From: Macrostomum lignano | Taxonomy: Eukaryota | NCBI GenBank assembly: GCA_002269645.1 | Contig: NIVC01004527.1 | Location: forward strand, 1-43,262 | Direction: 5' to 3' | DNA length: 43,262 bases | In this document: positions 9,504-43,262 of the stretch, piece after piece | How the letters are laid out: each line of letters begins with the position of its first letter | How positions within the stretch are numbered: the first letter of the stretch is position 1 | The notes under the pieces: model-generated | Seen by the model: the letters and a program-made list of their open reading frames with translations, nothing else | Database searches by the model: none | What the model was told of the DNA's origin: nothing | Program-made: the position numbers and the translations under genes

Positions 9504-9686
<183 letters not shown>

Positions 9687-16916: not shown

Positions 16917-18464
16917 GTCACTTGCTCATTGATCCTGGTCTATTGGTCATTTGCTCATTGATCCTGGTCTATTGGTCATTTGCTCATTGATCCTGGTCTA
17001 TTGGTCATTTGCTCATTGATCCTGGTCTATTGGTCATTTGCTCATTGATCCTGGTCTATTGGTCATTTGCTCATTGATCCTGGTCTATTGGTCATTTGCT
17101 CATTGATCCTGGTCTATTGGTCATTTGCTCATTGATCCTGGTCTATTGGTCATTTGCTCATTGATCCTGGTCTATTGGTCATTTGCTCATTGATCCTGGT
17201 CTATTGGTCATTTTCTCATTGATCCAGGTCCATCCTGGTCTGTTGGTCACTTGCTCATTGATCCTGGTCTATTGGTCCCTGGATCATTGATCCGGGTCTG
17301 TTGGTCACTTGCTCATTGATCCTGGTCTGTTGGTCACTTGCTCATTGATCCTGGTCTATTGGTGATATTTGCTCATTGATCCTGGTCTATTCTGGTCTGT
17401 TGGTCACTTGCTCATTGATCCTGGTCTATTGGTCATTTGCTCATTGATCCTGGTCCATCCTGGTCTGTTGGTCCCTTGCTCATTGATCCTGGTCTATTTG
17501 TCATTTGCTCATTGATTCTGGTCTATTGGTCCCTGGATCATTGATCCTGGTCTGTTGGTCACTTGCTCATTGATCCTGGTCTGTTGGTCACTTGCTCATT
17601 GATCCTGGTCTGTTGGTCACTTGCTCATTGATCCTGGTCTATTGGTCATTTGCTCATTAATCATGGTCTATTGGTCACTTGCTCATTGATCCTGGTCCAT
17701 CCTGGTCTGTTGGTCACTTGCTCATTGATCCTGGTCCATCCTGGTCTGTTGGTCACTTGCTCATTGATCCTGGTCCATCCTGGTCTGTTGGTCACTTGCT
17801 CATTGATCCTGGTCTATTGGTCATATTTGCTCATTGATCCTGGTCTATTCTGGTCTGTTGGTCACTTGCTCATTGATCCTGGTCTATTGGTCATATTTGC
17901 TCATTGATCCTGGTCCATCCTGGTCTATTGGTCACTTGCTCATTGATCCTGGTCCATCCTGGTCTGTTGGTCACTTGCTCATTGATCCTGGTCCATCCTG
18001 GTCTGTTGGTCACTTGCTCATTGATCCTGGTCTATTGGTCATATTTGCTCATTGATCCTGGTCTATTCTGGTCTGTTGGTCACTTGCTCATTGATCCTGG
18101 TCTATTGGTCATATTTGCTCATTGATCCTGGTCCATCCTGGTCTATTGGTCACTTGCTCATTGATCCTGGTCCATCCTGGTCTGTTGGTCACTTGCTCAT
18201 TGATCCTGGTCCATCCTGGTCTGTTGGTCACTTGCTCATTGATCCTGGTCTATTGGTCATATTTGCTCATTGATCCTGGTCTATTCTGGTCTGTTGGTCA
18301 CTTGCTCATTGATCCTGGTCTATTGGTCATATTTGCTCATTGATCCTGGTCCATCCTGGTCTATTGGTCACTTGCTCATTGATCCTGGTCCATCCTGGTC
18401 TGTTGGTCACTTGCTCATTGATCCTGGTCCATCCTGGACTGTTGGTCACTTGCTCATTGATCCT
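16917..18464. repeat. Satellite array: 29-bp monomer evolving into a 218-bp higher-order repeat
   Basis: TTGCTCATTGATCCTGGTCTATTGGTCAT repeats about 10 times (16922-~17210). 39-bp and 31-bp variants follow, arranged 39-31-39-39-39-31 = 218 bp. The ORF track confirms the period (17834/18052/18270 and 17904/18122/18340). Confidence 0.97.
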
Positions 18465-18669
18465 AGTCTTGAGTTCAGATTTTTCAGCTTTTACTACACA
18501 AACAAAAATGAAGCGAATAAAACAGACAATTCATGACACACTCGAGAGTTTATCTTTTGATAAGTGAAGTAGCTGAAACCAAACCTGCCATTATGTTTAA
18601 ATCTTTTTCAAATTTAATTTTATTTCGTTGAAAACAACTCTTCCAGACACAAACTTATGCCAATCACAG

Positions 18670-21549: not shown

Positions 21550-22063
21550 AGAACAGACCAATCTGTAAAACAGACCACTCTCCAGCAAAGACCACACAAG
21601 AACAAACCATTCCAGAACTGACCATTCTCCAGAACCGACTATAGACCACTCCAGAACCGACCATTCTCCTTTCTCCAGAACAGACCACTCCAGAACAGAC
21701 CACTCCGGAACAGACCACTCCAGAACAGGCCACTCCAGAACAGGCCACTCCAGAACAGACCACTCCAGAACAGACCACTCCAGAACAGACCACTCCAGAA
21801 CAGGCCACTCCAGAACAGGCCACTCCAGAACAGACCACTCCAGAACAGGCCACTCCAGAACAGGCCACTCCAGAACAGACCACTCCAGAACAGGCCACTC
21901 CAGAACAGACCACTCCAGAACAGGCCACTCCAGAACAGACCACTCCAGAACAGGCCACTCTAGAACAGACCACTCCAGAACAGGCCACTCCAGAACAGAC
22001 CACTCCAGAACAGACCACTCCAGAACAGACCACTCCAGAACAAACCACTCCAGAACAGACCAT
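21550..22063. repeat. 15-bp minisatellite (CCACTCCAGAACAGA/G)
   Basis: About 26 near-perfect units at 21678-22063 with degenerate units to the left; two alternating variants (ACAGA vs ACAGG). Confidence 0.97.
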
Positions 22064-22892
22064 TGAAATTGCATATTATCTAAAATAATCATGGTACTTT
22101 TTTGAAACATAGTTTCCTTCAGAAAATTGTCTCTTCAAAGTCAGATGCTCAGTCAGACCTTGCGTAAAAGTATGTTATTCAGGGTTACACTTCAGAAAGT
22201 TCCATGAAGGTTTATTCGAACTTTCTGACATTTAATAATAAGTTGAATGGCTCTCCAAACTTTTTTGTTGACAACTTTTTGCAGAGCAAGAACTCATAGG
22301 ATTAATTTTTCTGAAAAAAATCAGCGATGCAAAGCCATGCTGTTGTGAGCTTTCAGACTGAACTGGCACAAGTACCCTTGAATTCGTCGTTCATCATTTT
22401 GAGCTAACAAGGCGAAGGAGTCTTCTGTGTTTCGAAATGTCCGTTCTAAAAGCATAGCACATTATAAAAGCACTTCAGCTACTATGCTCAAGCTAAGAGA
22501 CAGTGCCAATTCTACTTCATAAGGCTCAAATTGTGTCGCGGCATCCTGAAGTGCATCAATTACGCTCGTAGGCAGTTTTTATAGCTTGGAGATTTTCCTG
22601 TCTCTATGAGCGAGGCCTTGGAGCCTTTTTCAATGTTCCAACAGGTGTTAAAATTCATTAAGCATCAACTGCTAGCCGTAGCCAAATAAAATTTACGTGT
22701 CTGCTCACAAAAGCGGTTTGAGTCCTTTCTACACCCATTTCCGGTCCAATAGAGGGAACAGCGAAAGCGCACCATTTTACAATGGGTAGTGCATGTGCCC
22801 TTGTAGGGCTGTAGGTGAACGGTGGACTTTGGCGGTTGCCTGGGGGTTGGTGCTCGTCGCCGGTCTGGTTTGCTGCTATAGGCTTAGGCGGT

Positions 22893-23219
22893 GCCCCCTT
22901 CGTCTGCCCCATGCTCGCGTTTTGATTGGCTGCGGCCGGCCCTGGTCTGGCACTCGCGCTGCCCTGCCCCCGTTCGTCTGCCCCGTGCTCGCGTTTTGAT
23001 TGGCTGCGGCCGGCCCTGGTCTGGCACTCGCGCTGCCCTGCCCCCGTTCGTCTGCCCCATGCTCGCGTTTTGATTGGCTGCGGCCGGCCCTGGTCTGGCA
23101 CTCGCGCTGCCCTGCCCCCGTTCGTCTGCCCCGTGCTCGCGTTTTGATTGGCTGCGGCCGGCCCTGGTCTCGCACTCGCGCTGCCCTGCCCCCGTGTTTG
23201 TGTTTTGTTTTGATTGGCT
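22893..23219. repeat. 74-bp GC/CpG-rich minisatellite, about 4.4 copies, each with an inverted CCAAT box
   Basis: Unit CCCCCGTTCGTCTGCCCCRTGCTCGCGTTTTGATTGGCTGCGGCCGGCCCTGGTCTGGCACTCGCGCTGCCCTG starts at 22893, 22967, 23041 and 23115. Confidence 0.95.
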
Positions 23220-23426
23220 GCTGCTGGGATTGTTCTCTCGATCTTGAATTGTGCGCTGTTTTTGCGCCGCTCCCCCTTCCGACAGTCTATCGATCAGAAT
23301 TAGGTCTGTGTTTTGCATTTTTTATCGCTTCTGAGTTTTGACGCAAGAGCCTTCTCCGCGCCTCCACTGTTCTAGTTCAGCTCTGAGAGTCTTATCGCGT
23401 GAATTCGCTGAACAACAGCAACAGCA

Positions 23427-23509
23427 ACAGCACAGCCCCTACACTTCCTCGCGGTGTGCTGTGGACGGTGGACAAATGTCGACAGGCAAATGTGCACTGA
23501 CTAAAGGGG
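23427..23509 (+). ncRNA. Putative HDV-like self-cleaving ribozyme at the retrotransposon 5' end
   Basis: P1 ACAGCAC(23427-33)/GTGCTGT(23456-62); P3 ACT/GGT around L3 TCCTCGC (identical to antigenomic HDV L3); P1.1 GG 23463-64; P4 CGGTGGACA/TGTGCACTG; J4/2 A-CTAA with the putative catalytic C at 23501; P2 CCCCT/AGGGG. Two extra nt (AC, 23441-42) lie between P2 and P3. Confidence 0.7.
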
Positions 23510-23532
23510 GCACACCTAGTACCTACAAGAGC

Positions 23533-23586
23533 TACTGTGATGACAGGTTGAATTTGGCGGGAGATGTGGAGAAAAATCCTGGACCA
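23533..23586 (+). other. 2A-like ribosomal-skipping (StopGo) peptide
   Basis: YCDDRLNLAGDVEKNPG|P matches the D(V/I)ExNPGP consensus, with the usual upstream L.L.GD, in frame with the downstream PHD/APE ORF. Confidence 0.85.
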
Positions 23587-23610
23587 AGGTCGAAGGAGGT
23601 GGAAAAACCC

Positions 23611-25164
23611 TGTGCAGTCTGCGCTAAGAGGACAAATGGAAGAGGACCAGTCTGCGGCGGATGCGGGAACCATATGCACCTGGGCTGCAGCAGGCTGAAA
23701 CGAGGTGAATTCTACGACCTGGAGAAGGTGGAAAGGCGGCGTGACTGGATGGGACCGTGCTGAAAGCGCGGCGAGGTAGAAGGGAGGCTCGAGACGCATC
23801 ACGGAATAGAAAGGAGGGAGATAGAAAAGTCAGAGCGATGTATAGTGTGCGGAAAGACCCTCAGAAGGGACCAACCGGGTCTTAAGTGTGAAGGCTGCGG
23901 AGCCGTGGGGCACCGGCAATGTACGGGGCTCAGCAGATGGGCCAAGGAGCAAGGAGCCAGATGGAGATGCCAGAAATGCCGGGAGGAGAGGCCGGAGGAC
24001 AAAGCGCTGGGGAAGAAGGCGCCGATGGAGAAGCAGGAGACGGGGCAGGTCCCGATGAAGAAGGGACGGTGCGCGGTCTGCGGAAGATTCAGAAGGACGG
24101 GACACGGCACCAGTTGCAGACGCTGTGGCAAAGAAGTGCACTGGACTTGCGCTGGTCTGAGCAGCCGTACGGTCAAGGAAAGAATGAAGCAGCTTGGAGG
24201 CTTTATGTGCACGGAGTGTGAGAAGGAAAAACAGGTGAAACCCGACAAAACGGCGGAGATGAAGCAGGACACGGAGGTGAGCGACGAAGGCATCAAAATC
24301 CTGCAATGGAACTGTGACAACTTGATGGCTAAGATCCCGGAGCTGAGAGTCTTCTTGGACAAGCACGATGTAGACGTTGCTATGCTCCAGGAGACCAAGT
24401 TGAGAGCTGAGGACGGAACCATCAATGTGGCTGGCTTTGAAGTGGTCAGGCAGGACAGAACCCGGCAGCAAGCTATCCGGAACTCCCGGGGAGGAGGGCT
24501 GGTCACGCTCATCCGGCAGGGGATCCCCTACAGAATCTTAGGGGAGTACTGCAACTATGTTGAAGAGGGTGTGGAGATCCTGGCGGTCCAACTCACGATG
24601 AATGGAGGTCCCATCAAGCTGGCGAATGTGTACATCCCCCCGGACAGGGGAGGAGGAGCGCAGGACATGGACAGGATCCCGAGCGGACAAAATTGGATAG
24701 TTCGAGGTGACCTTAATGTGCACCACGAGCTGTGGGACAATGAAATGGAAGCGGACGGGCGGGGAGAGCGTCTGGTAAACTGGATGGACGACAACGATAT
24801 GGTGGTGCTAAATACGGGCGATCCGACAAGGGACGCCAGAGGTGATATTAGGGATTCGGCGCCGGATGTCACGCTATGCTACCGCACGCAAGAGGCGCGC
24901 TGGGGCTGGCAGACGGTCAAAGAGCTGGGATCGGATCATAGACCGATCATCATGAGTAGCGGCCGAAGCGGTAGACCGGAGGTGAGCAGAAAGATTATCA
25001 CATGGAATTGGAACAAGGCGGACTGGGAAGCCTATCGTGAGATGTTTTCGAAGCTGGCTCTGGAATACAACTCTGATGAGGGCTCTACATCTGATGCTGA
25101 GAAACGGCTTAGGGAGGGCCTATTAACGGCGGCCAGAAAGTGTATTGGGTTGATCGCCAGGTAG
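23611..25164 (+). pseudogene. Three PHD-like zinc fingers followed by an apurinic-type endonuclease (retrotransposon ORF, interrupted)
   Basis: Fingers CAVC...CGGC..HMHLGC...W.GPC, CIVC...CEGC..GHRQC...WRCQKC and CAVC...CRRC..VHWTC...FMCTEC. APE motifs ILQWNC, LQETKL, GGGL, NVYIPP, GDLNVHH, APDVTL, SDHRPI. In-frame stops at 23761 and 25162. Confidence 0.9.
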
Positions 25165-25344
25165 ATCAGAGCGGAGATAAAAGCTAGAGATAAGAAGAGA
25201 GAATTGGCGGACGAGAATGGTAGTGGAGAGGCGGAATGGTCGGCGGCGAATGAAAAGCTGAGAGAGTATCAGGAGGAGCAAAGCCGAGGAGTGGAAAGCC
25301 CACGCCGAGGATAACTTGGCTGGAGGAAGAAGGCGGAAGCGGGC

Positions 25345-26348
25345 ATGGCGGAGTGCAAGCTTCAGAATATGGCCTTTGAGGATGAGGTGCCACCGCCACC
25401 ATGGCAACCGCGTGGGAGGGATGCTATTAAGATCGATGGTGTGAGGGAAATGTTGCCGGAGGACAGTTGGAGGAAAGGACTTTCCAGCATCATGGAACAG
25501 GGACCGATGGACCGGATACTCTACACGAACGGATCAGTGGTTGAGGACAAAGGAGGCAGTGGAGTGGTGGTGTGCCAACCCACGGAAAACGACCCGGAGG
25601 GGGTCGGTAAAGTTGAGGCGACCATCCAACAAGCTGCGGGTACGCCCTGCTCATCTACGCAAGCGGAGCTCTATGCGTTCATCGCTTGCCTGAACTGGCT
25701 TGATGAACACGCCGGCAAAGGAGGGCGCGTCATGATCATTAGTGACAGCCAGAGCTGCCTGCAAGCTATTAAAGGCTTGAGAAAAAACCCGCTGGCTATC
25801 AGAGCAAGGAATATGCTGAGGAAGCTGGAGGAGGAACAGATGGTGGTGAAGTTGATATGGGTGCCCGCGCACTGCGGTCTTGCAGGAAATGAACTGGCGG
25901 ATGAGGCGGCGAAAGTGGCATCGACTAGGGCCCTGGATGGCATCAGAGTGCCAGCCAGCAGCAGCAAAAATTACATCCAGAGCAAGCTAGGTAGAGACGA
26001 CGACAGATCACACAGGAGGAGCAAAGAGACGTACGGTGAGCAGGGAGTGGCGCTCCAACCGACGGGACTTCGTAAGGAGGAAGCGGTCGATTTCAGACGC
26101 TTCAGGAGTGGCCACTCCATGGATCTGGCGGCACACAGAAAACGGGTGGGCAAGCAAGAAGAAGGGTGGTGCACTAGGTGCGGCATGGCGGATGAGACGA
26201 TTATGGACTGTCCCGTCACGCGCAGCCTGAGGGAGAAGCTAGATCTGCACGGGCTGAGAGATCTGAGCAGAAGGCCGGGGAACGCGGCTGAGTTCTGGGG
26301 AACGCGGCTGAGTTCTGGAAGAAGTTCCGTGAGGAAGAACATCACTAG
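25345..26348 (+). pseudogene. RNase H domain and C-terminus of the retrotransposon ORF
   Basis: YTNGS (Asn at the first catalytic Asp, 25528-30), AELYA, ISDSQS and WVPAHCGLAGNELADEAAK. RFRSGH...CTRCG...DCP is a degenerate CCHC knuckle. A 20-bp tandem duplication (26279-98/26299-318) shifts the frame; without it the ORF ends WKKFREEEHH* at 26348. Confidence 0.88.
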
Positions 26349-26366
26349 AGGCTTGGTATCTACTAG

Positions 26367-26375
26367 GCACGCACG

Positions 26376-26420
<45 letters not shown>
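26367..26420. repeat. (GCAC)n + (AC)n microsatellite
   Basis: Direct reading; lies immediately 3' of the retrotransposon ORF end. Confidence 0.97.
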
Positions 26421-26425
<5 letters not shown>

Positions 26426-27032
26426 TGCACGAGGCACTTATTGGCCAAGTGTGCAAAAGCTTGCACATATTGGGACTGCTCCGACACACGAAAAATCACA
26501 CACACACACGTCCCCACACAGGCAATTTTCAACCCAACAAATAGATTTTTATTGACAACATGCTTTTAGCTTACTGAAAACAGTTGGAAAGCATTTTTCG
26601 AGGTGTATTGAACTCACAACAGACTGTACATGTATACTTGTCTAAAACAGAATTAAAAAACCCTTGCTGAATTCCACTTAAGGCAATAATATCAGCGCGT
26701 CAAATTTCACCGGATAATTTCAGCGATCATAGAATATAGAAGACAGGATGGTAAATGGCAAGGGACTTTAAGGTTATCGAAGACAAACGACATTGACACA
26801 TATCAAAAAAATTTTACGATCTGAATAAACAAAATTTGCTACATTTAGTGCCACTGGGAAAAAACAATTCTGTAGCGAAACTCCACTGTTCATAAAAATG
26901 AACTTTATTGATTATGACACAATCACTAGAATTACTCAAAAGGTACATGTCAGCTATTCGGACCCACAGAATGCTACGTAAAAGGATGCGGAAATGAACA
27001 ACACTATAGCAGAAGCCAGCACACACTATAGT

Positions 27033-27362
27033 ATGGGGCTGTCCCAACAATTCCACCATAGCCAGTGTGGATGGGGCTGTCCCAACAATTCCACCATAGC
27101 CAGTGTGGATGGGGCTGTCCCAACAATTCCACCATAGCCAGTGTGGATGGGGCTGTCCCAACAATTCCACCATAGCCAGTGTGGATGGGGCTGTCCCAAC
27201 AATTCCACCATAGCCAGTGTGGATAGGGCTGTCCCAACAATTCCAGCATAGCCAGTGTGGATGGGGCTGTCCCAACAATTCCACCGTAGCCAGTGTGGAT
27301 AGGGCTGTCCCAACAATTCCAGCATAGCCAGTGTGGATAGGGCTGTCCCAACAATTCCAGTA
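27033..27362. repeat. 38-bp minisatellite, about 8.6 copies
   Basis: GGGGCTGTCCCAACAATTCCACCATAGCCAGTGTGGAT starts at 27035, 27073 and onward; head-to-tail with no spacers. Confidence 0.97.
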
Positions 27363-27539
27363 TAGCTTGAAAAACAATATACACAAATACTATAAAAAGC
27401 AAAATGCTAGAGCTCCACCGCGGTCAGTGCACAGGATTTTATTAGAAACAGAATGCAAACAAATGCGTCCTTTAAATAATATTCGAGTGAATCAAACAAC
27501 AGTTGATCGGCTACTCGATTCAGAAACTTAAAATATAAC

Positions 27540-30500
27540 CAGCTCCGCCAGAAAACTCATGAATTAACTGACTGCTGCACAGATAGCGGCTGCTGCTGCT
27601 GCTGCTGCTGCGGCTTGTGAGCAGCAAGTGAACTAAATGACGGATGCAGCGGCGAGATCAGAATGCTCGCTGCTGATCGTTAAAGCGCATTCTTGTCTCT
27701 TAGGCATGTCGCTGGCGTTGCTGACTTCAGAAGCTGCGAGGAAAAGAAATCAATTAAGATAGGCTTGCTTTAGTAATCATTAATAGGCTATAAAAGAACC
27801 CTTTAATAGAACGTGTTCAACTAATGCTGGGTCTGTTTTGAAAAGTCAGAACTCAGAAGTAGTCGCGATTAGAATCAGTACGAGCGTATTGTCCCAATAA
27901 GTGCGACCCAACAAATGCTGTTCAAAAAATAAGCCTGGCTGCAATGTCCCAATAAATGCCCAACAAATTACTAGCCTTGAACTAGGCTGGGCTGTGTTTA
28001 CTATTCATTGCGTTTGTAGCTTGTGTCCCAACAATGCCACTGAGATGTTGCATTGCTTTTGAATTGTGCTCTACCAGGTAACACAAGTACTCTGGTGTAC
28101 AATACTTCTACAGAAGATAATACTCACCCAAAACAGATCGTCTCTTTCTCTTTAATCCTGTGCCGGATGGGTTTTCTTCAGATCCACCAGAAAATTCACA
28201 AATAGACTGACTGCCTGCAAGGATAGCGGCTGCTGCTGCTGCGGCTTGTGAGCAGCAAGTGAACTAAATGACGGATGCAGCGGCGAGATCAGAATGCTCG
28301 CTGCTGATCGTTAAAGCGCATTCTTGTCTCGTAGGCATGTCGCTGGCGTTGCTGACTTCAGAAGCTGTGAGGAAAAGAAATCAATTAAGATAGGCTTGCT
28401 TTAGTAATCATTAATAGGCTATAAAGAACCCTTTAATAGAACGTGTTCAACTAATGCTGGGTCTGTTTTGAAAAGTCAGAACTCAGAAGTAGTCGCGATT
28501 AGAATCAGTATTGTCCCAATAAGTGCGACCCAACAAATGCTGTTCAAAAAATAAGCCTGGCTGCAATGTCCCAATAAATGCCCAACAAATTACTAGCCTT
28601 GAACTAGGCTGGGCTGTGTTTACTATTCATTGCGTTTGTAGCTTGTGTCCCAACAATGCCACTGAGATGTTGCATTGCTTTTGAATTGTGCTCTACCAGG
28701 TAACACAAGTACTCTGGTGTACAATACTTCTACAGAAGATAATACTCACCCAAAACAGATCGTCTCTTTCTCTTTAATCCTGTGCCGGATGGGTTTTCTT
28801 CAGATCCACCAGAAAATTCACAAATAGACTGACTGCCTGCAAGGATAGCGGCTGCTGCTGCTGCGGCTTGTGAGCAGCAAGTGAACTAAATGACGGATGC
28901 AGCGGCGAGATCAGAATGCTCGCTGCTGATCGTTAAAGCGCATTCTTGTCTCTTAGGCATGTCGCTGGCGTTGCTGACTTCAGAAGCTGTGAGGAAAAGA
29001 AATCAATTAAGATAGGCTTGCTTTAGTAATCATTAATAGGCTATAAAGGAACCCTTTAATAGAACGTGTTCAACTAATGCTGGGTCTGTTTTGAAAAGTC
29101 AGAACTCAGAAGTAGTCGCGATTAGAATCAGTATTGTCCCAATAAGTGCGACCCAACAAATGCTGTTCAAAAAATAAGCCTGGCTGCAATGTCCCAATAA
29201 ATGCCCAACAAATTACTAGCCTTGAACTAGGCTGGGCTGTGTTTACTATTCATTGCGTTTGTAGCTTGTGTCCCAACAATGCCACTGAGATGTTGCATTG
29301 CTTTTGAATTGTGCTCTACCAGGTAACACAAGTACTCTGGTGTACAATACTTCTACAGAAGATAATACTCACCCAAAACAGATCGTCTCTTTCTCTTTAA
29401 TCCTGTGCCGGATGGGTTTTCTTCAGATCCACCAGAAAATTCACAAATAGACTGACTGCCTGCAAGGATAGCGGCTGCTGCTGCTGCTGCTGCTGCTGCT
29501 GCGGCTTGTGAGCAGCAAGTGAACTAAATGACGGATGCAGCGGCGAGATCAGAATGCTCGCTGCTGATCGTTAAAGCGCATTCTTGTCTCTTAGGCATGT
29601 CGCTGGCGTTGCTGACTTCAGAAGCTGTGAGGAAAAGAAATCAATTAAGATAGGCTTGCTTTAGTAATCATTAATAGGCTATAAAGGAACCCTTTAATAG
29701 AACGTGTTCAACTAATGCTGGGTCTGTTTTGAAAAGTCAGAACTCAGAAGTAGTCGCGATTAGAATCAGTATTGTCCCAATAAGTGCGACCCAACAAATG
29801 CTGTTCAAAAAATAAGCCTGGCTGCAATGTCCCAATAAATGCCCAACAAATTACTAGCCTTGAACTAGGCTGGGCTGTGTTTACTATTCATTGCGTTTGT
29901 AGCTTGTGTCCCAACAATGCCACTGAGATGTTGCATTGCTTTTGAATTGTGCTCTACCAGGTAACACAAGTACTCTGGTGTACAATACTTCTACAGAAGA
30001 TAATACTCACCCAAAACAGATCGTCTCTTTCTCTTTAATCCTGTGCCGGATGGGTTTTCTTCAGATCCACCAGAAAATTCACAAATAGACTGACTGCCTG
30101 CAAGGATAGCGGCTGCTGCTGCTGCGGCTTGTGAGCAGCAAGTGAACTAAATGACGGATGCAGCGGCGAGATCAGAATGCTCGCTGCTGATCGTTAAAGC
30201 GCATTCTTGTCTCTTAGGCATGTCGCTGGCGTTGCTGACTTCAGAAGCTGTGAGGAAAAGAAATCAATTAAGATAGGCTTGCTTTAGTAATCATTAATAG
30301 GCTATAAAGAACCCTTTAATAGAACGTGTTCAACTAATGCTGGGTCTGTTTTGAAAAGTCAGAACTCAGAAGTAGTCGCGATTAGAATCAGTATTGTCCC
30401 AATAAGTGCGACCCAACAAATGCTGTTCAAAAAATAAGCCTGGCTGCAATGTCCCAATAAATGCCCAACAAATTACTAGCCTTGAACTAGGCTGGGCTGT

Positions 30501-33500
30501 GTTTACTATTCATTGCGTTTGTAGCTTGTGTCCCAACAATGCCACTGAGATGTTGCATTGCTTTTGAATTGTGCTCTACCAGGTAACACAAGTACTCTGG
30601 TGTACAATACTTCTACAGAAGATAATACTCACCCAAAACAGATCGTCTCTTTCTCTTTAATCCTGTGCCGGATGGGTTTTCTTCAGATCCACCAGAAAAT
30701 TCACAAATAGACTGACTGCCTGCAAGGATAGCGGCTGCTGCTGCTGCGGCTTGTGAGCAGCAAGTGAACTAAATGACGGATGCAGCGGCGAGATCAGAAT
30801 GCTCGCTGCTGATCGTTAAAGCGCATTCTTGTCTCTTAGGCATGTCGCTGGCGTTGCTGACTTCAGAAGCTGTGAGGAAAAGAAATCAATTAAGATAGGC
30901 TTGCTTTAGTAATCATTAATAGGCTATAAAGGAACCCTTTAATAGAACGTGTTCAACTAATGCTGGGTCTGTTTTGAAAAGTCAGAACTCAGAAGTAGTC
31001 GCGATTAGAATCAGTATTGTCCCAATAAGTGCGACCCAACAAATGCTGTTCAAAAAATAAGCCTGGCTGCAATGTCCCAATAAATGCCCAACAAATTACT
31101 AGCCTTGAACTAGGCTGGGCTGTGTTTACTATTCATTGCGTTTGTAGCTTGTGTCCCAACAATGCCACTGAGATGTTGCATTGCTTTTGAATTGTGCTCT
31201 ACCAGGTAACACAAGTACTCTGGTGTACAATACTTCTACAGAGATAATACTCACCCAAAACAGATCGTCTCTTTCTCTTTAATCCTGTGCCGGATGGGTT
31301 TTCTTCAGATCCACCAGAAAATTCACAAATAGACTGACTGCCTGCAAGGATAGCGGCTGCTGCTGCTGCTGCTGCTGCTGCTGCAGCAAGTGAACTAAAT
31401 GACGGATGCAGCGGCGAGATCAGAATGCTCGCTGCTGATCGTTAAAGCGCATTCTTGTCTCTTAGGCATGTCGCTGGCGTTGCTGACTTCAGAAGCTGTG
31501 AGGAAAAGAAATCAATTAAGATAGGCTTGCTTTAGTAATCATTAATAGGCTATAAAGGAACCCTTTAATAGAACGTGTTCAACTAATGCTGGGTCTGTTT
31601 TGAAAAGTCAGAACTCAGAAGTAGTCGCGATTAGAATCAGTATTGTCCCAATAAGTGCGACCCAACAAATGCTGTTCAAAAAATAAGCCTGGCTGCAATG
31701 TCCCAATAAATGCCCAACAAATTACTAGCCTTGAACTAGGCTGGGCTGTGTTTACTATTCATTGCGTTTGTAGCTTGTGTCCCAACAATGCCACTGAGAT
31801 GTTGCATTGCTTTTGAATTGTGCTCTACCAGGTAACACAAGTACTCTGGTGTACAATACTTCTACAGCAGATAATACTCACCCAAAACAGATCGTCTCTT
31901 TCTCTTTAATCCTGTGCCGGATGGGTTTTCTTCAGATCCACCAGAAAATTCACAAATAGACTGACTGCCTGCAAGGATAGCGGCTGCTGCTGCTGCGGCT
32001 TGTGAGCAGCAAGTGAACTAAATGACGGATGCAGCGGCGAGATCAGAATGCTCGCTGCTGATCGTTAAAGCGCATTCTTGTCTCTTAGGCATGTCGCTGG
32101 CGTTGCTGACTTCAGAAGCTGTGAGGAAAAGAAATCAATTAAGATAGGCTTGCTTTAGTAATCATTAATAGGCTATAAAGAACCCTTTAATAGAACGTGT
32201 TCAACTAATGCTGGGTCTGTTTTGAAAAGTCAGAACTCAGAAGTAGTCGCGATTAGAATCAGTATTGTCCCAATAAGTGCGACCCAACAAATGCTGTTCA
32301 AAAAATAAGCCTGGCTGCAATGTCCCAATAAATGCCCAACAAATTACTAGCCTTGAACTAGGCTGGGCTGTGTTTACTATTCATTGCGTTTGTAGCTTGT
32401 GTCCCAACAATGCCACTGAGATGTTGCATTGCTTTTGAATTGTGCTCTACCAGGTAACACAAGTACTCTGGTGTACAATACTTCTACAGAAGATAATACT
32501 CACCCAAAACAGATCGTCTCTTTCTCTTTAATCCTGTGCCGGACGGGTTTTCTTCAGATCCACCAGAAAATTCACAAATAGACTGACTGCCTGCACGGAT
32601 AGCGGCTGCTGCTGCTGCGGCTTGTGAGCAGCAAGTGAACTAAATGACGGATGCAGCGGCGAGATCAGAATGCTCGCTGCTGATCGTTAAAGCGCATTCT
32701 TGTCTCTTAGGCATGTCGCTGGCGTTGCTGACTTCAGAAGCTGTGAGGAAAAGAAATCAATTAAGATAGGCTTGCTTTAGTAATCATTAATAGGCTATAA
32801 AGAACCCTTTAATAGAACGTGTTCAACTAATGCTGGGTCTGTTTTGAAAAGTCAGAACTCAGAAGTAGTCGCGATTAGAATCAGTATTGTCCCAATAAGT
32901 GCGACCCAACAAATGCTGTTCAAAAAATAAGCCTGGCTGCAATGTCCCAATAAATGCCCAACAAATTACTAGCCTTGAACTAGGCTGGGCTGTGTTTACT
33001 ATTCATTGCGTTTGTAGCTTGTGTCCCAACAATGCCACTGAGATGTTGCATTGCTTTTGAATTGTGCTCTACCAGGTAACACAAGTACTCTGGTGTACAA
33101 TACTTCTACAGAGATAATACTCACCCAAAACAGATCGTCTCTTTCTCTTTAATCCTGTGCCGGACGGGTTTTCTTCAGATCCACCAGAAAATTCACAAAT
33201 AGACTGACTGCCTGCACGGATAGCGGCTGCTGCTGCTGCGGCTTGTGAGCAGCAAGTGAACTAAATGACGGATGCAGCGGCGAGATCAGAATGCTCGCTG
33301 CTGATCGTTAAAGCGCATTCTTGTCTCTTAGGCATGTCGCTGGCGTTGCTGACTTCAGAAGCTGTGAGGAAAAGAAATCAATTAAGATAGGCTTGCTTTA
33401 GTAATCATTAATAGGCTATAAAGGAACCCTTTAATAGAACGTGTTCAACTAATGCTGGGTCTGTTTTGAAAAGTCAGAACTCAGAAGTAGTCGCGATTAG

Positions 33501-36500
33501 AATCAGTATTGTCCCAATAAGTGCGACCCAACAAATGCTGTTCAAAAAATAAGCCTGGCTGCAATGTCCCAATAAATGCCCAACAAATTACTAGCCTTGA
33601 ACTAGGCTGGGCTGTGTTTACTATTCATTGCGTTTGTAGCTTGTGTCCCAACAATGCCACTGAGATGTTGCATTGCTTTTGAATTGTGCTCTACCAGGTA
33701 ACACAAGTACTCTGGTGTACAATACTTCTACAGCAGATAATACTCACCCAAAACAGATCGTCTCTTTCTCTTTAATCCTGTGCCGGACGGGTTTTCTTCA
33801 GATCCACCAGAAAATTCACAAATAGACTGACTGCCTGCAGGATAGCGGCTGCTGCTGCTGCGGCTTGTGAGCAGCAAGTGAACTAAATGACGGATGCAGC
33901 GGCGAGATCAGAATGCTCGCTGCTGATCGTTAAAGCGCATTCTTGTCTCTTAGGCATGTCGCTGGCGTTGCTGACTTCAGAAGCTGTGAGGAAAAGAAAT
34001 CAATTAAGATAGGCTTGCTTTAGTAATCATTAATAGGCTATAAAGGAACCCTTTAATAGAACGTGTTCAACTAATGCTGGGTCTGTTTTGAAAAGTCAGA
34101 ACTCAGAAGTAGTCGCGATTAGAATCAGTATTGTCCCAATAAGTGCGACCCAACAAATGCTGTTCAAAAAATAAGCCTGGCTGCAATGTCCCAATAAATG
34201 CCCAACAAATTACTAGCCTTGAACTAGGCTGGGCTGTGTTTACTATTCATTGCGTTTGTAGCTTGTGTCCCAACAATGCCACTGAGATGTTGCATTGCTT
34301 TTGAATTGTGCTCTACCAGGTAACACAAGTACTCTGGTGTACAATACTTCTACAGAAGATAATACTCACCCAAAACAGATCGTCTCTTTCTCTTTAATCC
34401 TGTGCCGGACGGGTTTTCTTCAGATCCACCAGAAAATTCACAAATAGACTGACTGCCTGCACGGATAGCGGCTGCTGCTGCTGCGGCTTGTGAGCAGCAA
34501 GTGAACTAAATGACGGATGCAGCGGCGAGATCAGAATGCTCGCTGCTGATCGTTAAAGCGCATTCTTGTCTCTTAGGCATGTCGCTGGCGTTGCTGACTT
34601 CAGAAGCTGTGAGGAAAAGAAATCAATTAAGATAGGCTTGCTTTAGTAATCATTAATAGGCTATAAAGGAACCCTTTAATAGAACGTGTTCAACTAATGC
34701 TGGGTCTGTTTTGAAAAGTCAGAACTCAGAAGTAGTCGCGATTAGAATCAGTATTGTCCCAATAAGTGCGACCCAACAAATGCTGTTCAAAAAATAAGCC
34801 TGGCTGCAATGTCCCAATAAATGCCCAACAAATTACTAGCCTTGAACTAGGCTGGGCTGTGTTTACTATTCATTGCGTTTGTAGCTTGTGTCCCAACAAT
34901 GCCACTGAGATGTTGCATTGCTTTTGAATTGTGCTCTACCAGGTAACACAAGTACTCTGGTGTACAATACTTCTACAGCAGATAATACTCACCCAAAACA
35001 GATCGTCTCTTTCTCTTTAATCCTGTGCCGGACGGGTTTTCTTCAGATCCACCAGAAAATTCACAAATAGACTGACTGCCTGCAAGGATAGCGGCTGCTG
35101 CTGCTGCGGCTTGTGAGCAGCAAGTGAACTAAATGACGGATGCAGCGGCGAGATCAGAATGCTCGCTGCTGATCGTTAAAGCGCATTCTTGTCTCTTAGG
35201 CATGTCGCTGGCGTTGCTGACTTCAGAAGCTGTGAGGAAAAGAAATCAATTAAGATAGGCTTGCTTTAGTAATCATTAATAGGCTATAAAGGAACCCTTT
35301 AATAGAACGTGTTCAACTAATGCTGGGTCTGTTTTGAAAAGTCAGAACTCAGAAGTAGTCGCGATTAGAATCAGTATTGTCCCAATAAGTGCGACCCAAC
35401 AAATGCTGTTCAAAAAATAAGCCTGGCTGCAATGTCCCAATAAATGCCCAACAAATTACTAGCCTTGAACTAGGCTGGGCTGTGTTTACTATTCATTGCG
35501 TTTGTAGCTTGTGTCCCAACAATGCCACTGAGATGTTGCATTGCTTTTGAATTGTGCTCTACCAGGTAACACAAGTACTCTGGTGTACAATACTTCTACA
35601 GAGATAATACTCACCCAAAACAGATCGTCTCTTTCTCTTTAATCCTGTGCCGGACGGGTTTTCTTCAGATCCACCAGAAAATTCACAAATAGACTGACTG
35701 CCTGCACGGATAGCGGCTGCTGCTGCTGCGGCTTGTGAGCAGCAAGTGAACTAAATGACGGATGCAGCGGCGAGATCAGAATGCTCGCTGCTGATCGTTA
35801 AAGCGCATTCTTGTCTCTTAGGCATGTCGCTGGCGTTGCTGACTTCAGAAGCTGTGAGGAAAAGAAATCAATTAAGATAGGCTTGCTTTAGTAATCATTA
35901 ATAGGCTATAAAGGAACCCTTTAATAGAACGTGTTCAACTAATGCTGGGTCTGTTTTGAAAAGTCAGAACTCAGAAGTAGTCGCGATTAGAATCAGTATT
36001 GTCCCAATAAGTGCGACCCAACAAATGCTGTTCAAAAAATAAGCCTGGCTGCAATGTCCCAATAAATGCCCAACAAATTACTAGCCTTGAACTAGGCTGG
36101 GCTGTGTTTACTATTCATTGCGTTTGTAGCTTGTGTCCCAACAATGCCACTGAGATGTTGCATTGCTTTTGAATTGTGCTCTACCAGGTAACACAAGTAC
36201 TCTGGTGTACAATACTTCTACAGCAGATAATACTCACCCAAAACAGATCGTCTCTTTCTCTTTAATCCTGTGCCGGACGGGTTTTCTTCAGATCCACCAG
36301 AAAATTCACAAATAGACTGACTGCCTGCACGGATAGCGGCTGCTGCTGCTGCTGCTGCTGCTGTTGTGAGCAGCAAGTGAACTAAATGACGGATGCAGCG
36401 GCGAGATCAGAATGCTCGCTGCTGATCGTTAAAGCGCATTCTTGTCTCTTAGGCATGTCGCTGGCGTTGCTGACTTCAGAAGCTGTGAGGAAAAGAAATC

Positions 36501-39500
36501 AATTAAGATAGGCTTGCTTTAGTAATCATTAATAGGCTATAAAGGAACCCTTTAATAGAACGTGTTCAACTAATGCTGGGTCTGTTTTGAAAAGTCAGAA
36601 CTCAGAAGTAGTCGCGATTAGAATCAGTATTGTCCCAATAAGTGCGACCCAACAAATGCTGTTCAAAAAATAAGCCTGGCTGCAATGTCCCAATAAATGC
36701 CCAACAAATTACTAGCCTTGAACTAGGCTGGGCTGTGTTTACTATTCATTGCGTTTGTAGCTTGTGTCCCAACAATGCCACTGAGATGTTGCATTGCTTT
36801 TGAATTGTGCTCTACCAGTAACACAAGTACTCTGGTGTACAATACTTCTACAGCAGATAATACTCACCCAAAACAGATCGTCTCTTTCTCTTTAATCCTG
36901 TGCCGGACGGGTTTTCTTCAGATCCACCAGAAAATTCACAAATAGACTGACTGCCTGCACGGATAGCGGCTGCTGCTGCTGCGGCTTGTGAGCAGCAAGT
37001 GAACTAAATGACGGATGCAGCGGCGAGATCAGAATGCTCGCTGCTGATCGTTAAAGCGCATTCTTGTCTCTTAGGCATGTCGCTGGCGTTGCTGACTTCA
37101 GAAGCTGTGAGGAAAAGAAATCAATTAAGATAGGCTTGCTTTAGTAATCATTAATAGGCTATAAAGGAACCCTTTAATAGAACGTGTTCAACTAATGCTG
37201 GGTCTGTTTTGAAAAGTCAGAACTCAGAAGTAGTCGCGATTAGAATCAGTATTGTCCCAATAAGTGCGACCCAACAAATGCTGTTCAAAAAATAGGCCTG
37301 GCTGCAATGTCCCAATAAATGCCCAACAAATTACTAGCCTTGAGCTAGGCTGGGCTGTGTTTACTATTCATTGCGTTTGTAGCTTGTGTCCCAACAATGC
37401 CACTAAGATGTTGCATTGCTTTTGAATTGTGCTCTACCAGTAACACAAGTACTCTGGTGTACAATACTTCTACAGCAGATAATACTCACCCAAAACAGAT
37501 CGTCTCTTTCTCTTTAATCCTGTGCCGGACGGGTTTTCTTCAGATCCACCAGAAAATTCACAAATAGACTGACTGCCTGCACGGATAGCGGCTGCTGCTG
37601 CTGCGGCTTGTTGTGAGCAGCAAGTGAACTAAATGACGGATGCAGCGGCGAGATCAGAATGCTCGCTGCTGATCGTTAAAGCGCATTCTTGTCTCTTAGG
37701 CATGTCGCTGGCGTTGCTGACTTCAGAAGCTGCGAGGAAAAGAAATCAATTAAGATAGGCTTGCTTTAGTAATCATTAATAGGCTATAAAGGAACCCTTT
37801 AATAGAACGTGTTCAACTAATGCTGGGTCTGTTTTGAAAAGTCAGAACTCAGAAGTAGTCGCGATTAGAATCAGTATTGTCCCAATAAGTGCGACCCAAC
37901 AAATGCTGTTCAAAAAATAAGGCCTGGCTGCAATGTCCCAATAAATGCCCAACAAATTACTAGCCTTGAGCTAGGCTGGGCTGTGTTTACTATTCATTGC
38001 GTTTGTAGCTTGTGTCCCAACAATGCCACTGAGATTGTTGCATTGCTTTTGAATTGTGCTCTACCAGGTAACACAAGTACTCTGGTGTACAATACTTCTA
38101 CAGCAGATAATACTCACCCAAAACAGATCGTCTCTTTCTCTTTAATCCTGTGCCGGACGGGTTTTCTTCAGATCCACCAGAAAATTCACAAATAGACTGA
38201 CTGCCTGCACGGATAGCGGCTGCTGCTGCTGCGGCTTGTGAGCAGCAAGTGAACCAAATGACGGATGCAGCGGCGAGATCAGAATGCTCGCTGCTGATCG
38301 TTAAAGCGCATTCTTGTCTCTTAGGCATGTCGCTGGCGTTGCTGACTTCAGAAGCTGCGAGGAAAAGAAATCAATTAAGATAGGCTTGCTTTAGTAATCA
38401 TTAATAGGCTATAAAGGAACCCTTTAATAGAACGTGTTCAACTAATGCTGGGTCTGTTTTGAAAAGTCAGAACTCAGAAGTAGTCGCGATTAGAATCAGT
38501 ATTGTCCCAATAAGTGCGACCCAACAAATGCTGTTCAAAAAATAGGCCTGGCTGCAATGTCCCAATAAATGCCCAACAAATTACTAGCCTTGAGCTAGGC
38601 TGGGCTGTGTTTACTATTCATTGCGTTTGTAGCTTGTGTCCCAACAATGCCACTGAGATTGTTGCATTGCTTTTGAATTGTGCTCTACCAAGTAACACAA
38701 GTACTCTGGTGTACAATACTTCTACAGCAGATAATACTCACCCAAAACAGATCGTCTCTTTCTCTTTAATCCTGTGCCGGACGGGTTTTCTTCAGATCCA
38801 CCAGAAAATTCACAAATAGACTGACTGCCTGCACGGATAGCGGCTGCTGCTGCTGCGGCTTGTGAGCAGCAAGTGAACCAAATGACGGATGCAGCGGCGA
38901 GATCAGAATGCTCGCTGCTGATCGTTAAAGCGCATTCTTGTCTCTTAGGCATGTCGCTGGCGTGGCTGACTTCAGAATCTGCGAGGAAAAGAAATCAATT
39001 AAGATAGGCTTGCTTTAGTAATCATTAATAGGCTATAAAGGAACCCTTTAATAGAACGTGTTCAACTAATGCTGGGTCTGTTTTGAAAAGTCAGAACTCA
39101 GAAGTAGTCGCGATTAGAATCAGTATTGTCCCAATAAGTGCGACCCAACAAATGCTGTTCAAAAAATAGCCTGGCTGCAATGTCCCAATAAATGCCCAAC
39201 AAATTACTAGCCTTGAGCTAGGCTGGGCTGTGTTTACTATTCATTGCGTTTGTAGCTTGTGTCCCAACAATGCCACTGAGATTGTTGCATTGCTTTTGAA
39301 TTGTGCTCTACCAGGTAACACAAGTACTCTGGTGTACAATACTTCTACAGCAGATAATACTCACCCAAAACAGATCGTCTCTTTCTCTTTAATCCTGTGC
39401 CGGACGGGTTTTCTTCAGATCCACCAGAAAATTCACAAATAGACTGACTGCCTGCACGGATAGCGCTGCTGCTGCTGCTGCGGCTTGTGAGCAGCAAGTG

Positions 39501-42500
39501 AACCAAATGACGGATGCAGCGGCGAGATCAGAATGCTCGCTGCTGATCGTTAAAGCGCATTCTTGTCTCTTAGGCATGTCGCTGGCGTGGCTGACTTCAG
39601 AATCTGCGAGGAAAAGAAATCAATTAAGATAGGCTTGCTTTAGTAATCATTAATAGGCTATAAAGGAACCCTTTAATAGAACGTGTTCAACTAATGCTGG
39701 GTCTGTTTTGAAAAGTCAGAACTCAGAAGTAGTCGCGATTAGAATCAGTATTGTCCCAATAAGTGCGACCCAACAAATGCTGTTCAAAAAATAGGCCTGG
39801 CTGCAATGTCCCAATAAATGCCCAACAAATTACTAGCCTTGAGCTAGGCTGGGCTGTGTTTACTATTCATTGCGTTTGTAGCTTGTGTCCCAACAATGCC
39901 ACTGAGATTGTTGCATTGCTTTTGAATTGTGCTCTACCAGTAACACAAGTACTCTGGTGTACAATACTTCTACAGCAGATAATACTCACCCAAAACAGAT
40001 CGTCTCTTTCTCTTTAATCCTGTGCCGGACGGGTTTTCTTCAGATCCACCAGAAAATTCACAAATAGACTGACTGCCTGCACGGATAGCGGCTGCTGCTG
40101 CTGCGGCTTGTGAGCAGCAAGTGAACCAAATGACGGATGCAGCGGCGAGATCAGAATGCTCGCTGCTGATCGTTAAAGCGCATTCTTGTCTCTTAGGCAT
40201 GTCGCTGGCGTGGCTGACTTCAGAATCTGCGAGGAAAAGAAATCAATTAAGATAGGCTTGCTTTAGTAATCATTAATAGGCTATAAAGGAACCCTTTAAT
40301 AGAACGTGTTCAACTAATGCTGGGTCTGTTTTGAAAAGTCAGAACTCAGAAGTAGTCGCGATTAGAATCAGTATTGTCCCAATAAGTGCGACCCAACAAA
40401 TGCTGTTCAAAAAATAGGCCTGGCTGCAATGTCCCAATAAATGCCCAACAAATTACTAGCCTTGAGCTAGGCTGGGCTGTGTTTACTATTCATTGCGTTT
40501 GTAGCTTGTGTCCCAACAATGCCACTGAGATTGTTGCATTGCTTTTGAATTGTGCTCTACCAAGTAACACAAGTACTCTGGTGTACAATACTTCTACAGC
40601 AGATAATACTCACCCAAAACAGATCGTCTCTTTCTCTTTAATCCTGTGCCGGACGGGTTTTCTTCAGATCCACCAGAAAATTCACAAATAGACTGACTGC
40701 CTGCACGGATAGCGGCTGCTGCTGCTGCGGCTTGTGAGCAGCAAGTGAACCAAATGACGGATGCAGCGGCGAGATCAGAATGCTCGCTGCTGATCGTTAA
40801 AGCGCATTCTTGTCTCTTAGGCATGTCGCTGGCGTGGCTGACTTCAGAATCTGCGAGGAAAAGAAATCAATTAAGATAGGCTTGCTTTAGTAATCATTAA
40901 TAGGCTATAAAGGAACCCTTTAATAGAACGTGTTCAACTAATGCTGGGTCTGTTTTGAAAAGTCAGAACTCAGAAGTAGTCGCGATTAGAATCAGTATTG
41001 TCCCAATAAGTGCGACCCAACAAATGCTGTTCAAAAAATAGGCCTGGCTGCAATGTCCCAATAAATGCCCAACAAATTACTAGCCTTGAGCTAGGCTGGG
41101 CTGTGTTTACTATTCAATGCGTTTGTAGCTTGTGTCCCAACAATGCCACTGAGATTGTTGCATTGCTTTTGAATTGTGCTCTACCAAGTAACACAAGTAC
41201 TCTGGTGTACAATACTTCTACAGCAGATAATACTCACCCAAAACAGATCGTCTCTTTCTCTTTAATCCTGTGCCGGACGGGTTTTCTTCAGATCCACCAG
41301 AAAATTCACAAATAGACTGACTGCCTGCACGGATAGCGGCTGCTGCTGCTGCGGCTTGTGAGCAGCAAGTGAACCAAATGACGGATGCAGCGGCGAGATC
41401 AGAATGCTCGCTGCTGATCGTTAAAGCGCATTCTTGTCTCTTAGGCATGTCGCTGGCGTGGCTGACTTCAGAATCTGCGAGGAAAGAAATCAATTAAGAT
41501 AGGCTTGCTTTAGTAATCATTAATAGGCTATAAAGGAACCCTTTAATAGAACGTGTTCAACTAATGCTGGGTCTGTTTTGAAAAGTCAGAACTCAGAAGT
41601 AGTCGCGATTAGAATCAGTATTGTCCCAATAAGTGCGACCCAACAAATGCTGTTCAAAAAATAGGCCTGGCTGCAATGTCCCAATAAATGCCCAACAAAT
41701 TACTAGCCTTGAGCTAGGCTGGGCTGTGTTTACTATTCAATGCGTTTGTAGCTTGTGTCCCAACAATGCCACTGAGATTGTTGCATTGCTTTTGAATTGT
41801 GCTCTACCAAGTAACACAAGTACTCTGGTGTACAATACTTCTACAGCAGATAATACTCACCCAAAACAGATCGTCTCTTTCTCTTTAATCCTGTGCCGGA
41901 CGGGTTTTCTTCAGATCCACCAGAAAATTCACAAAGAGACTGACTGCCTGCACGGATAGCGGCTTGCTGCTGCTGCGGCTTGTGAGCAGCAAGTGAACCA
42001 AATGACGGATGCAGCGGCGAGATCAGAATGCTCGCTGCTGATCGTTAAAGCGCATTCTTGTCTCTTAGGCATGTCGCTGGCGTGGCTGACTTCAGAATCT
42101 GCGAGGAAAAGAAATCAATTAAGATAGGCTTGCCTTTAGTAATCATTAATAGGCTATAAAGGAACCCTTTAATAGAACGTGTTCAACTAATGCTGGGTCT
42201 GTTTTGAAAAGTCAGAACTCAGAAGTAGTCGCGATTAGAATCAGTATTGTCCCAATAAGTGCGACCCAACAAATGCTGTTCAAAAAATAGGCCTGGCTGC
42301 AATGTCCAATAAATGCCCAACAAATTACTAGCCTTGAGCTAGGCTGGGCTGTGTTTACTATTCAATGCGTTTGTAGCTTGTGTCCCAACAATGCCACTGA
42401 GATTGTTGCATTGCTTTTGAATTGTGCTCTACCAAGTAACACAAGTACTCTGGTGTACAATACTTCTACAGCAGATAATACTCACCCAAAACAGATCGTC

Positions 42501-43262
42501 TCTTTCTCTTTAATCCTGTGCCGGACGGGTTTTCTTCAGATCCACCAGAAAATTCACAAATAGACTGACTGCCTGCACGGATAGCGGCTGCTGCTGCTGC
42601 GGCTTGTGAGCAGCAAGTGAACCAAATGACGGATGCAGCGGCGAGATCAGAATGCTCGCTGCTGATCGTTAAAGCGCATTCTTGTCTCTTAGGCATGTCG
42701 CTGGCGTGGCTGACTTCAGAATCTGCGAGGAAAAGAAATCAATTAAGATAGGCTTGCTTTAGTAATCATTAATAGGCTATAAAGGAACCCTTTAATAGAA
42801 CGTGTTCAACTAATGCTGGGTCTGTTTTGAAAAGTCAGAACTCAGAAGTAGTCGCGATTAGAATCAGTATTGTCCCAATAAGTGCGACCCAACAAATGCT
42901 GTTCAAAAAATAGGCCTGGCTGCAATGTCCCAATAAATGCCCAACAAATTACTAGCCTTGAGCTAGGCTGGGCTGTGTTTACTATTCAATGCGTTTGTAG
43001 CTTGTGTCCCAACAATGCCACTGAGATTGTTGCATTGCTTTTGAATTGTGCTCTACCAAGTAACACAAGTACTCTGGTGTACAATACTTCTACAGCAGAT
43101 AATACTCACCCAAAACAGATCGTCTCTTTCTCTTTAATCCTGTGCCGGACGGGTTTTCTTCAGATCCACCAGAAAATTCACAAAGAGACTGACTGCCTGC
43201 ACGGATAGCGGCTGCTGCTGCTGCGGCTTGTGAGCAGCAAGTGAACCAAATGACGGATGCAG
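27540..43262. repeat. Tandem array of a ~624-bp unit, about 25 copies, running off the window end
   Basis: The anchor GATAGCGGCTGCTG recurs every ~622-640 bp from 27582 to ~43204. Copies are near-identical apart from (CTG)n length, scattered indels and a few diagnostic SNPs. Confidence 0.99.
38118..38354 (-). CDS. Representative putative exon inside the 624-bp unit (237 nt, phase 1-1)
   Basis: Acceptor TTAATTGATTTCTTTTCCTCGCAG| before 38354 and donor TTTTGG|GTGAGT after 38118. Open frame SEVSNASDMPKRQECALTISSEHSDLAAASVIWFTCCSQAAAAAAAIRAGSQSICEFSGGSEENPSGTGLKRKRRSVL. No transcript evidence. Confidence 0.4.

Follow-up and report, generated by a model that had tools for sequence, protein, structure and literature searches.

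A tandem exon-intron cassette array in Macrostomum lignano, probably an expanded and decaying paralogue of a species-specific gene

The Stellate and Su(Ste) arrays of Drosophila are made of tandem units that derive from a protein-coding gene including its intron, are transcribed, and have some of their frames disabled; the flagelliform silk gene of spiders (Flag) reportedly consists of iterated exon-intron units whose introns are homogenised at least as much as their exons, an observation ascribed to Hayashi and Lewis in 2000. In human LPA, the kringle IV type 2 (KIV-2) repeat has a 5.5-kb unit with two exons and a variable copy number (PMC4378929). An array of this known kind occupies the right-hand part of contig NIVC01004527.1 of Macrostomum lignano (assembly GCA_002269645.1; positions 1 to 43,262, the whole stretch analysed and here called the window): a cassette of one 237-nt exon and one 387-nt intron, repeated head to tail on the minus strand. 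The searchable literature yielded neither the locus itself nor any M. lignano satellite report or locus tags. The unit is a true, tandemly amplified exon-intron cassette of a species-specific gene family that, to judge by public gene models, is transcribed, and the array in the window is probably an expanded, decaying paralogue, an intragenic macrosatellite derived from such a cassette.

As in the KIV-2 repeat, the unit holds whole exon material together with its intron, is symmetric in frame and, to judge by the gene models at its paralogues, spliced head to tail, varies widely in copy number, and is homogenised throughout, intron included; KIV-2 differs in that all its copies are open, encode a folded kringle domain and have a known phenotype, whereas the M. 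lignano cassette is nine times shorter, has a single exon and no known domain, and carries a stop in most of its window copies. With Flag it shares repeated exon-intron modules and the concerted evolution of the entire cassette, but Flag is a functional structural protein gene, and no function or constraint was seen in the window array. With the Stellate and Su(Ste) arrays it shares gene-derived, intron-bearing tandem units and the disabled frames of some arrays; there, however, the units are whole genes with promoters of their own, while the M. lignano unit is an internal cassette of a single transcription unit.

The cassette array and its gene end

The array, arranged head to tail, begins at about 27,430 and reaches the edge of the window at 43,262; its units are spaced at 621-638 bp. 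Cut at the minus-strand motif GGTGAGTAT, it resolves into 24 complete units (u1-u24, 43,109-28,128), a partial u0 at the window edge and a diverged last unit, u25; it is thus a macrosatellite in the usual sense (tandem, with a unit above 100 bp and many copies, here 24 full and two partial or variant ones). The original prediction, made from the letters alone, had described a tandem unit of one exon plus one intron in at least 25 copies, each with a branch-like TTAAT, a pyrimidine tract, a CAG acceptor and a donor on the minus strand, and this anatomy holds throughout: GGTGAGTAT and CTTAAT each occur 25 times on the minus strand of the array, once per unit; GTGAGTAT opens each unit; CTTAAT stands about 27 nt before TTTTCCTC[G/A]CAG in all units (GCAG in 10, ACAG in 15); and the exon-like stretch always closes with ...TTTTGG directly ahead of the next GTGAGT. 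Every unit is accordingly a cassette repeat, with a whole exon, both splice sites (GGTGAGTAT donor, pyrimidine-tract/CAG acceptor) and a symmetric phase. Introns measure 384-388 nt. The exon is 237 nt long in 17 of the 24 full units and divisible by three in 19 of them; its predicted phase, 1-1, was borne out, and its predicted divisibility in these 19, the remaining five units being frameshifted. It translates as (A/D)SEVS(N/H)ASDMPKRQECALTISSEHSDLAAASVIWFTCCSQAAAAAAAIRAGSQSICEFSGGSEENPSGTGLKRKRRSVL, ending in ...GLKRKRRSVL, and the cassette peptides include SVLASEVSNASDMP and a 57-residue spacer.

Unit u8 may serve as an example. Its intron (38355..38741, minus strand, 387 nt) reads GTGAGTAT...CTTAAT...TTTTCCTCGCAG and contains the TTGTTGGGAC motif once in exact and four times in degenerate form; its exon (38118..38354, minus strand, 237 nt, phase 1-1) encodes ASEVSNASDMPKRQECALTISSEHSDLAAASVIWFTCCSQAAAAAAAIRAGSQSICEFSGGSEENPSGTGLKRKRRSVL. 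The junction 38742>38354, which the original prediction had singled out, joins exactly the donor and acceptor of this unit. Shuffling the unit 5000 times brought a strong donor together with a pyrimidine-tract/CAG acceptor and an open exon divisible by three in only 5 cases (0.1%), and the gene-like signals are therefore not due to chance.

Along the minus strand the array changes in character. The partial exon of u0 (43110..43262) is cut by the window edge, past which the array goes on, and is of the open form, with TGG in the codon that matters below. Units u1-u8 (38118..43109, minus strand), with an intron of 386-387 nt and an exon of 237 nt each, all retain TGG as well; u1, u3, u4, u5, u7 and u8 are fully open, and u2 (+1) and u6 (+2) are frameshifted within their (GCA)n run. 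Units u9-u24 (28128..38117, minus strand) all have TAG in place of TGG, with the acceptor GCAG in u9 and ACAG in u10-u24; u11, u15 and u19 are also frameshifted.

At its left edge the array has the 3′ end of the gene. The last unit departs from the repeat at about 27,545 and passes into a terminal exon, a 3′ untranslated region (UTR) and a poly(A) signal. The terminal intron (27734..28127, minus strand, 394 nt) has a GCAG acceptor; the terminal exon (27520..27733, minus strand) is homologous to the final coding exon of the public gene model BOX15_Mlig026960g1 (...IRAGSQLIDEFSGRAGYFLSF*). In an alignment of u25 with the terminal exon of the paralogous locus L002, described below, the homologue of the L002 stop codon is a TGA at window positions 27522-27520, and the window exon has a TAG at 27635-27633, a 1-nt deletion near 27,578 and several substitutions. 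The 3′ UTR (27420..27519, minus strand), with AATAAA at 27443-27438, is conserved in L002, as is a 38-bp minisatellite just downstream of the gene end (27033..27366, minus strand; nine copies in the window, about five in L002). The array is thus set between distinct exons and the 3′ end of a gene: terminal exon, TGA and AATAAA are kept in L002, and a 189-nt first array exon is found in all three paralogues.

Two side observations belong to this region. The minus strand of the window has 34 occurrences of the 10-mer TTGTTGGGAC, against 0.08 expected; they are confined to the nine repeats of the 38-bp minisatellite (27033-27366) and to one site in each cassette intron (for example 38014-38023), each intron having four further degenerate copies. 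The 10-mer may reflect shared descent or be a binding motif. Farther on lies a fragment of a retroelement without long terminal repeats (non-LTR; 23338-26544, plus strand), with an open reading frame (ORF) for PHD fingers and an apurinic/apyrimidinic (AP) endonuclease (23845-25164), an RNase H ORF (25345-26544), and no reverse-transcriptase domain between the two. It ends in (CA)13 exactly where the homology between the window and L002 stops (breakpoint at about 26414-26421), and is therefore an insertion specific to the window copy, some 1 kb beyond the poly(A) signal.

Paralogous loci and spliced gene models

The search with the 79-residue cassette peptide that the original prediction had proposed finds matches only among predicted proteins of M. 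lignano (word-indexed search, 5.8 billion proteins); HMMER, run exhaustively on 1.8 billion representative proteins, returned M. lignano repeat fragments, one diverged subfamily (subfamily B, as opposed to the window's subfamily A) and one spurious bacterial PKD protein. Pfam has no family for the cassette peptide or for the plus-strand ORF, a search of PDB sequences gave chance matches only (E>0.08), an AlphaFold2 model of the three-cassette protein P0017 reached a mean confidence (pLDDT) of 38 with no confident fold, and exact look-up of the 76-residue unspliced ORF and of P0001 found no record. Two units with flank had no Rfam match at E<=1 and a tRNA scan found none, which argues against a repeat derived from spliced-leader RNA, small nuclear RNA or tRNA.

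Three GenBank models among the peptide matches led to three further loci in the Mlig_3_7 assembly: L001 (NIVC01003014.1, 4.3 units), L002 (NIVC01000487.1, 7.3 units) and L003 (NIVC01001277.1, cut off by the contig end after at least 16 units). They have an upstream flank in common over at least 1.9-2.7 kb, at 95-97% identity, and unit position 455, behind ttttcttttgtgcgcccacgcacag|GTTCATCC, is the starting point of all three arrays; an acceptor-like site, cacag|GTTCATCC, precedes the first array exon, which in L002, from its position-455 start, measures 189 nt and is phase-compatible. On the other side, L002 11651-12458 matches window 27214-26414 at 97%. The common flanks and the common array start make these loci paralogous copies of a single locus rather than independent insertions; redundancy in assembly Mlig_3_7 has been ascribed to extra large chromosomes of the sequenced line (PMC5730564). 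The copies differ in their state. TGG is present in all six full units of L002, five of which have open exons of 249 nt, and this seven-unit locus looks, from its reading frame, like an open gene; in L003, 12 of 16 units have TAG. No convincing start exon or upstream ORF was found in L002. A candidate upstream donor, GAGAAA|GTAAGT, was set aside: an in-frame TGA lies just before it, so that only a 5′ UTR is possible. The similarity of the upstream flank to the cassette intron is no better than that of shuffles.

The GenBank annotation of the species rests on RNA-seq data (StringTie/TACO) and on transcripts built de novo, and TransDecoder was used to call its ORFs (PMC5730564). Three of its RNA-seq-derived models, all at paralogues, splice cassette exons head to tail at the predicted sites and in the predicted phase: P0006 uses a 387-nt GT..AG intron in L001; P0017 (BOX15_Mlig026960g1) is what results, a 12-nt gap excepted, when L002 10001-10256, 10644-10892 and 11280-11497 are conceptually spliced, with two cassette exons and the terminal exon joined at predicted GT/AG sites; and P0018 runs through three cassettes of L003 and ends at a TAG. 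These junctions, together with the homology of the window's terminal exon, TGA and AATAAA to P0017, support the proposal that the unit is one exon and one intron of a gene, amplified, and the models speak, though indirectly, against the lack of spliced reads that the original prediction had named as its refutation.

Some 30 distinct UniProt and GenBank entries, P0001-P0025 among them, are fragments of the cassette repeat, variously joined; their splice sites differ and include the alternative donors CC|GTCCGG and GGCA|GTCAGT as well as CAGCAG|CG, an internal acceptor. The names given to some of them ('Secreted protein', 'Rho-GAP domain-containing', 'DRIM domain-containing') are not supported by the fragment sequences.

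Disabled frames, missing constraint and the readings weighed

The frame is not open through the window array. An in-frame TGG>TAG change, in the codon of ...SVIWFT..., is present in 17 exon copies out of 26 (u9-u25, from 37,631 to 27,633 in the window), so that TGG is retained only in the nine copies u0-u8; five units are frameshifted, namely u2 (+1), u6 (+2), u11 (+8), u15 (-1) and u19 (+4). The suggestion that the copies could be chained in frame fails on these 17 nonsense copies, the five frameshifted units and the frameshifted terminal exon, and the expectation that the (CTG)n, or (GCA)n, run varies mostly by whole codons fails too: only three of its seven length variants do so (u9 +3, u22 +15, u25 +9). 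The original prediction mentioned neither the TAG copies nor the frameshifted units, nor that the last unit is a terminal exon.

The changes among copies show no trace of a frame. In the window, 6-7 of the intron's 387 columns are variable and 7-8 of the exon's 237; with a single variable column of the (GCA)n run set aside, the exon changes comprise five missense, one nonsense and one synonymous. When 50 units from the four loci (the window and L001-L003) are pooled, 16 of the 387 positions in the intron are variable and 13 of the 237 in the exon (Fisher p=0.44); of 14 pooled exon changes, two are synonymous, 11 missense and one nonsense, against a random expectation of 23/73/4%. They are indistinguishable from random, and there is no coding constraint among the copies. 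The comparison of exon with intron had been put forward at the outset, with equal, frame-blind change in both as the outcome that would tell against the exon-cassette proposal, and equal, frame-blind change is what was found. Variants lie in blocks and gradients along the window array, which is the signature of unequal exchange and homogenisation, and units are 98-100% identical within the array as against 95-98% to units of other loci, the pattern of concerted evolution.

From the block of TAG copies, the frameshifts and the broken terminal exon, the window copy is therefore read as a decaying paralogue that is turning into satellite DNA. The course of events that we infer would run as follows: the cassette, a 237-nt phase 1-1 exon with a 387-nt intron, would have been amplified by unequal crossing-over or replication slippage and its copies kept uniform by concerted evolution, while copy numbers diverged among the paralogues (4.3, 7.3, at least 16 and, in the window, at least 25). 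Transcripts of the family would splice the cassette exons head to tail and end in the terminal exon with its stop and poly(A) signal; in a short paralogue the open chain may yield a Ser/Ala-rich protein of repetitive build in which KRKRR recurs at intervals of 79-83 residues. In the window, homogenisation would have spread the nonsense variant TGG>TAG through 17 consecutive copies, two thirds of the array, with the presumable loss of the copy's function, and a transcript of this copy, if there is any, would be non-coding or truncated. The original prediction had offered a gene with a massively duplicated exon cassette and a satellite born from a gene fragment as alternatives; both apply in part, the former to L002, which looks open, the latter to the copy in the window.

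Several points weigh against this account as a whole. Subfamily B (UniProt A0A1I8HX90, P0016), with an 80-residue cassette 53% identical to that of the window, is open over at least three cassettes and the terminal exon, which suggests past or present coding constraint on the family; and the nine upstream copies of open type could still give a product cut at the first TAG. The evidence for transcription and splicing consists of public gene models at paralogous copies, and multi-mapping reads are common in repeats. P0017 itself has one mismatch to L002 10644-10892, a 12-nt gap in the (GCA)n run by which four of 11 locus-encoded alanines are absent; its transcript probably came from another paralogous array, the public models mixing copies. 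Single-base and 1-2-nt indels may be long-read assembly errors, so that the count of frameshifts is possibly too high. Lastly, no promoter, start codon or signal peptide was found in the 2-7 kb upstream of the paralogous arrays.

The reading that survives next best, unlikely as it is, is that the window copy is a working gene for a long repetitive precursor, cut at RKRR|S and KR into many identical peptides, with the TAG-bearing and frameshifted cassettes skipped or with a protein that ends at the first TAG after nine open-type copies. Multi-copy precursors and polyproteins of this sort, such as neuropeptide precursors and nematode polyprotein antigens, are cut at dibasic or furin sites. The cassette resembles them in its regular RKRR|S and KR sites and in having a conserved short segment beside a spacer that varies between subfamilies A and B, and differs from them in its one intron per repeat, the want of an amidation glycine and the disabling of most window copies. 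Its product is rich in Ser and Ala, with a polymorphic poly-Ala tract and the basic KRKRR motif; the predicted cleavage sites KRKRR|S and PKR|Q are present in every cassette, and both are kept in subfamily B, whose ends, AS(E/K)VSNASDMPKR and GLKRKRRSVL, hardly differ from the ends of the window cassette. The KRKRR at the exon end had been foreseen, with the label of a nuclear-localisation signal; the motif is there, but to judge by its residues it could be such a signal or a furin-type site (RKRR|S), fitting both equally.

In favour of a working gene, symmetric phase 1-1 exons permit in-frame skipping of any cassette, the 5′ (right) side has the nine copies of TGG type, three fragment models are named 'Secreted protein' in UniProt (a name that only fragment models bear), and KRKRR-SVLAS[E/K]VSNASDMP-KR, across the exon junction, is nearly identical in both subfamilies while the middle of the cassette has diverged. 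Against it, frameshifts affect two of the nine upstream copies, and the terminal exon is broken too; purifying selection was not seen among the 50 copies; neither a signal peptide nor a start exon was found upstream in the paralogues; and cysteines stand at different positions in subfamily B and in the window cassette, the predicted structure is of low confidence (pLDDT 38), and no homologues were found outside M. lignano. A related proposal, which we regard as improbable, moves the function to the family: it would be a Macrostomum-specific secreted polyprotein from which the segment SVLAS[E/K]VSNASDMP, spanning the exon junction between KRKRR and KR, is released, the number of cassettes would set the dose, and the window copy would be a runaway, decaying duplicate.

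That the array is an ordinary, non-genic satellite, with splice signals arisen by chance and gene models that are artefacts of ORF-calling on piled-up repeat reads, is very unlikely. It would account for exon and intron varying equally and without regard to frame, for the lack of Pfam, PDB and Rfam matches, and for public models that are short, partial and inconsistent in their choice of splice sites; it leaves unexplained, however, a combination of signals met in 0.1% of shuffles, introns placed by RNA-derived models at exactly the predicted sites in three loci, a distinct terminal exon, stop and AATAAA conserved between paralogues, and a subfamily B with the same cassette architecture and an open frame.

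It is hardly probable, too, that the copy number and some of the variants were produced by assembling noisy long reads through a repeat. Mlig_3_7 is PacBio-based and redundant, and many of the differences are 1-nt indels; but the exchange of TGG for TAG is a substitution, found in 17 consecutive window units and 12 of 16 units of L003, and ordered gradients of variants are not expected from random error. Dispersal of a satellite by a transposable element or circular DNA, for which the second locus L001 with its different downstream sequence, the TTGTTGGGAC motif common to the adjoining minisatellite and the nearby transposons could be adduced, is rejected as very improbable because the flanks of L001-L003 are homologous, given that these loci have the same upstream flank and array start, that L002 also has the 3′ flank of the window, and that the array is not bounded by a transposon protein or a terminal repeat.

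Neighbouring sequence and meaning for M. lignano

The rest of the window is also rich in repeats, in keeping with a reported 15% share of simple and tandem repeats in the M. lignano genome. It contains a (GA)87 run at 9507-9681, a nested minisatellite of 29/39/70/218 bp extending over 1.5 kb at 16917-18469, a 15-bp repeat in 26 copies at 21673-22062, a 74-bp repeat in four copies at 22892-23195, and a 45-bp repeat in five copies at 6236-6468, inside a Ser/Ala/Pro-rich ORF. A transposase ORF of the mariner/Mos1 type lies at 10744-11700 on the minus strand (HTH_48, E=1.6e-11, with a partial DDE domain). Two ORFs on the plus strand, at 14664-15134 and 15534-16010, possibly belong as exons to a gene not yet annotated; a weak Pfam match of AbfB or beta-trefoil-like type (E=4e-4, below the curated cut-off) falls on the first.

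If the window array is, as we think probable, a decaying paralogue, the locus gives a clean and datable view of a piece of a gene becoming satellite DNA: among paralogues of one locus in one genome, the short copy is open and the long copies are overrun by a single homogenised nonsense variant. For the annotation of M. lignano it is a warning, as fragments of the repeat are filed as 'hypothetical', 'secreted' or 'Rho-GAP domain' proteins. The species is a model in which in situ hybridisation, RNA interference and transgenesis are routine. Should it prove true that the intact paralogue is expressed and translated, M. lignano would have a species-specific repetitive protein whose dose is tied to the number of repeats.

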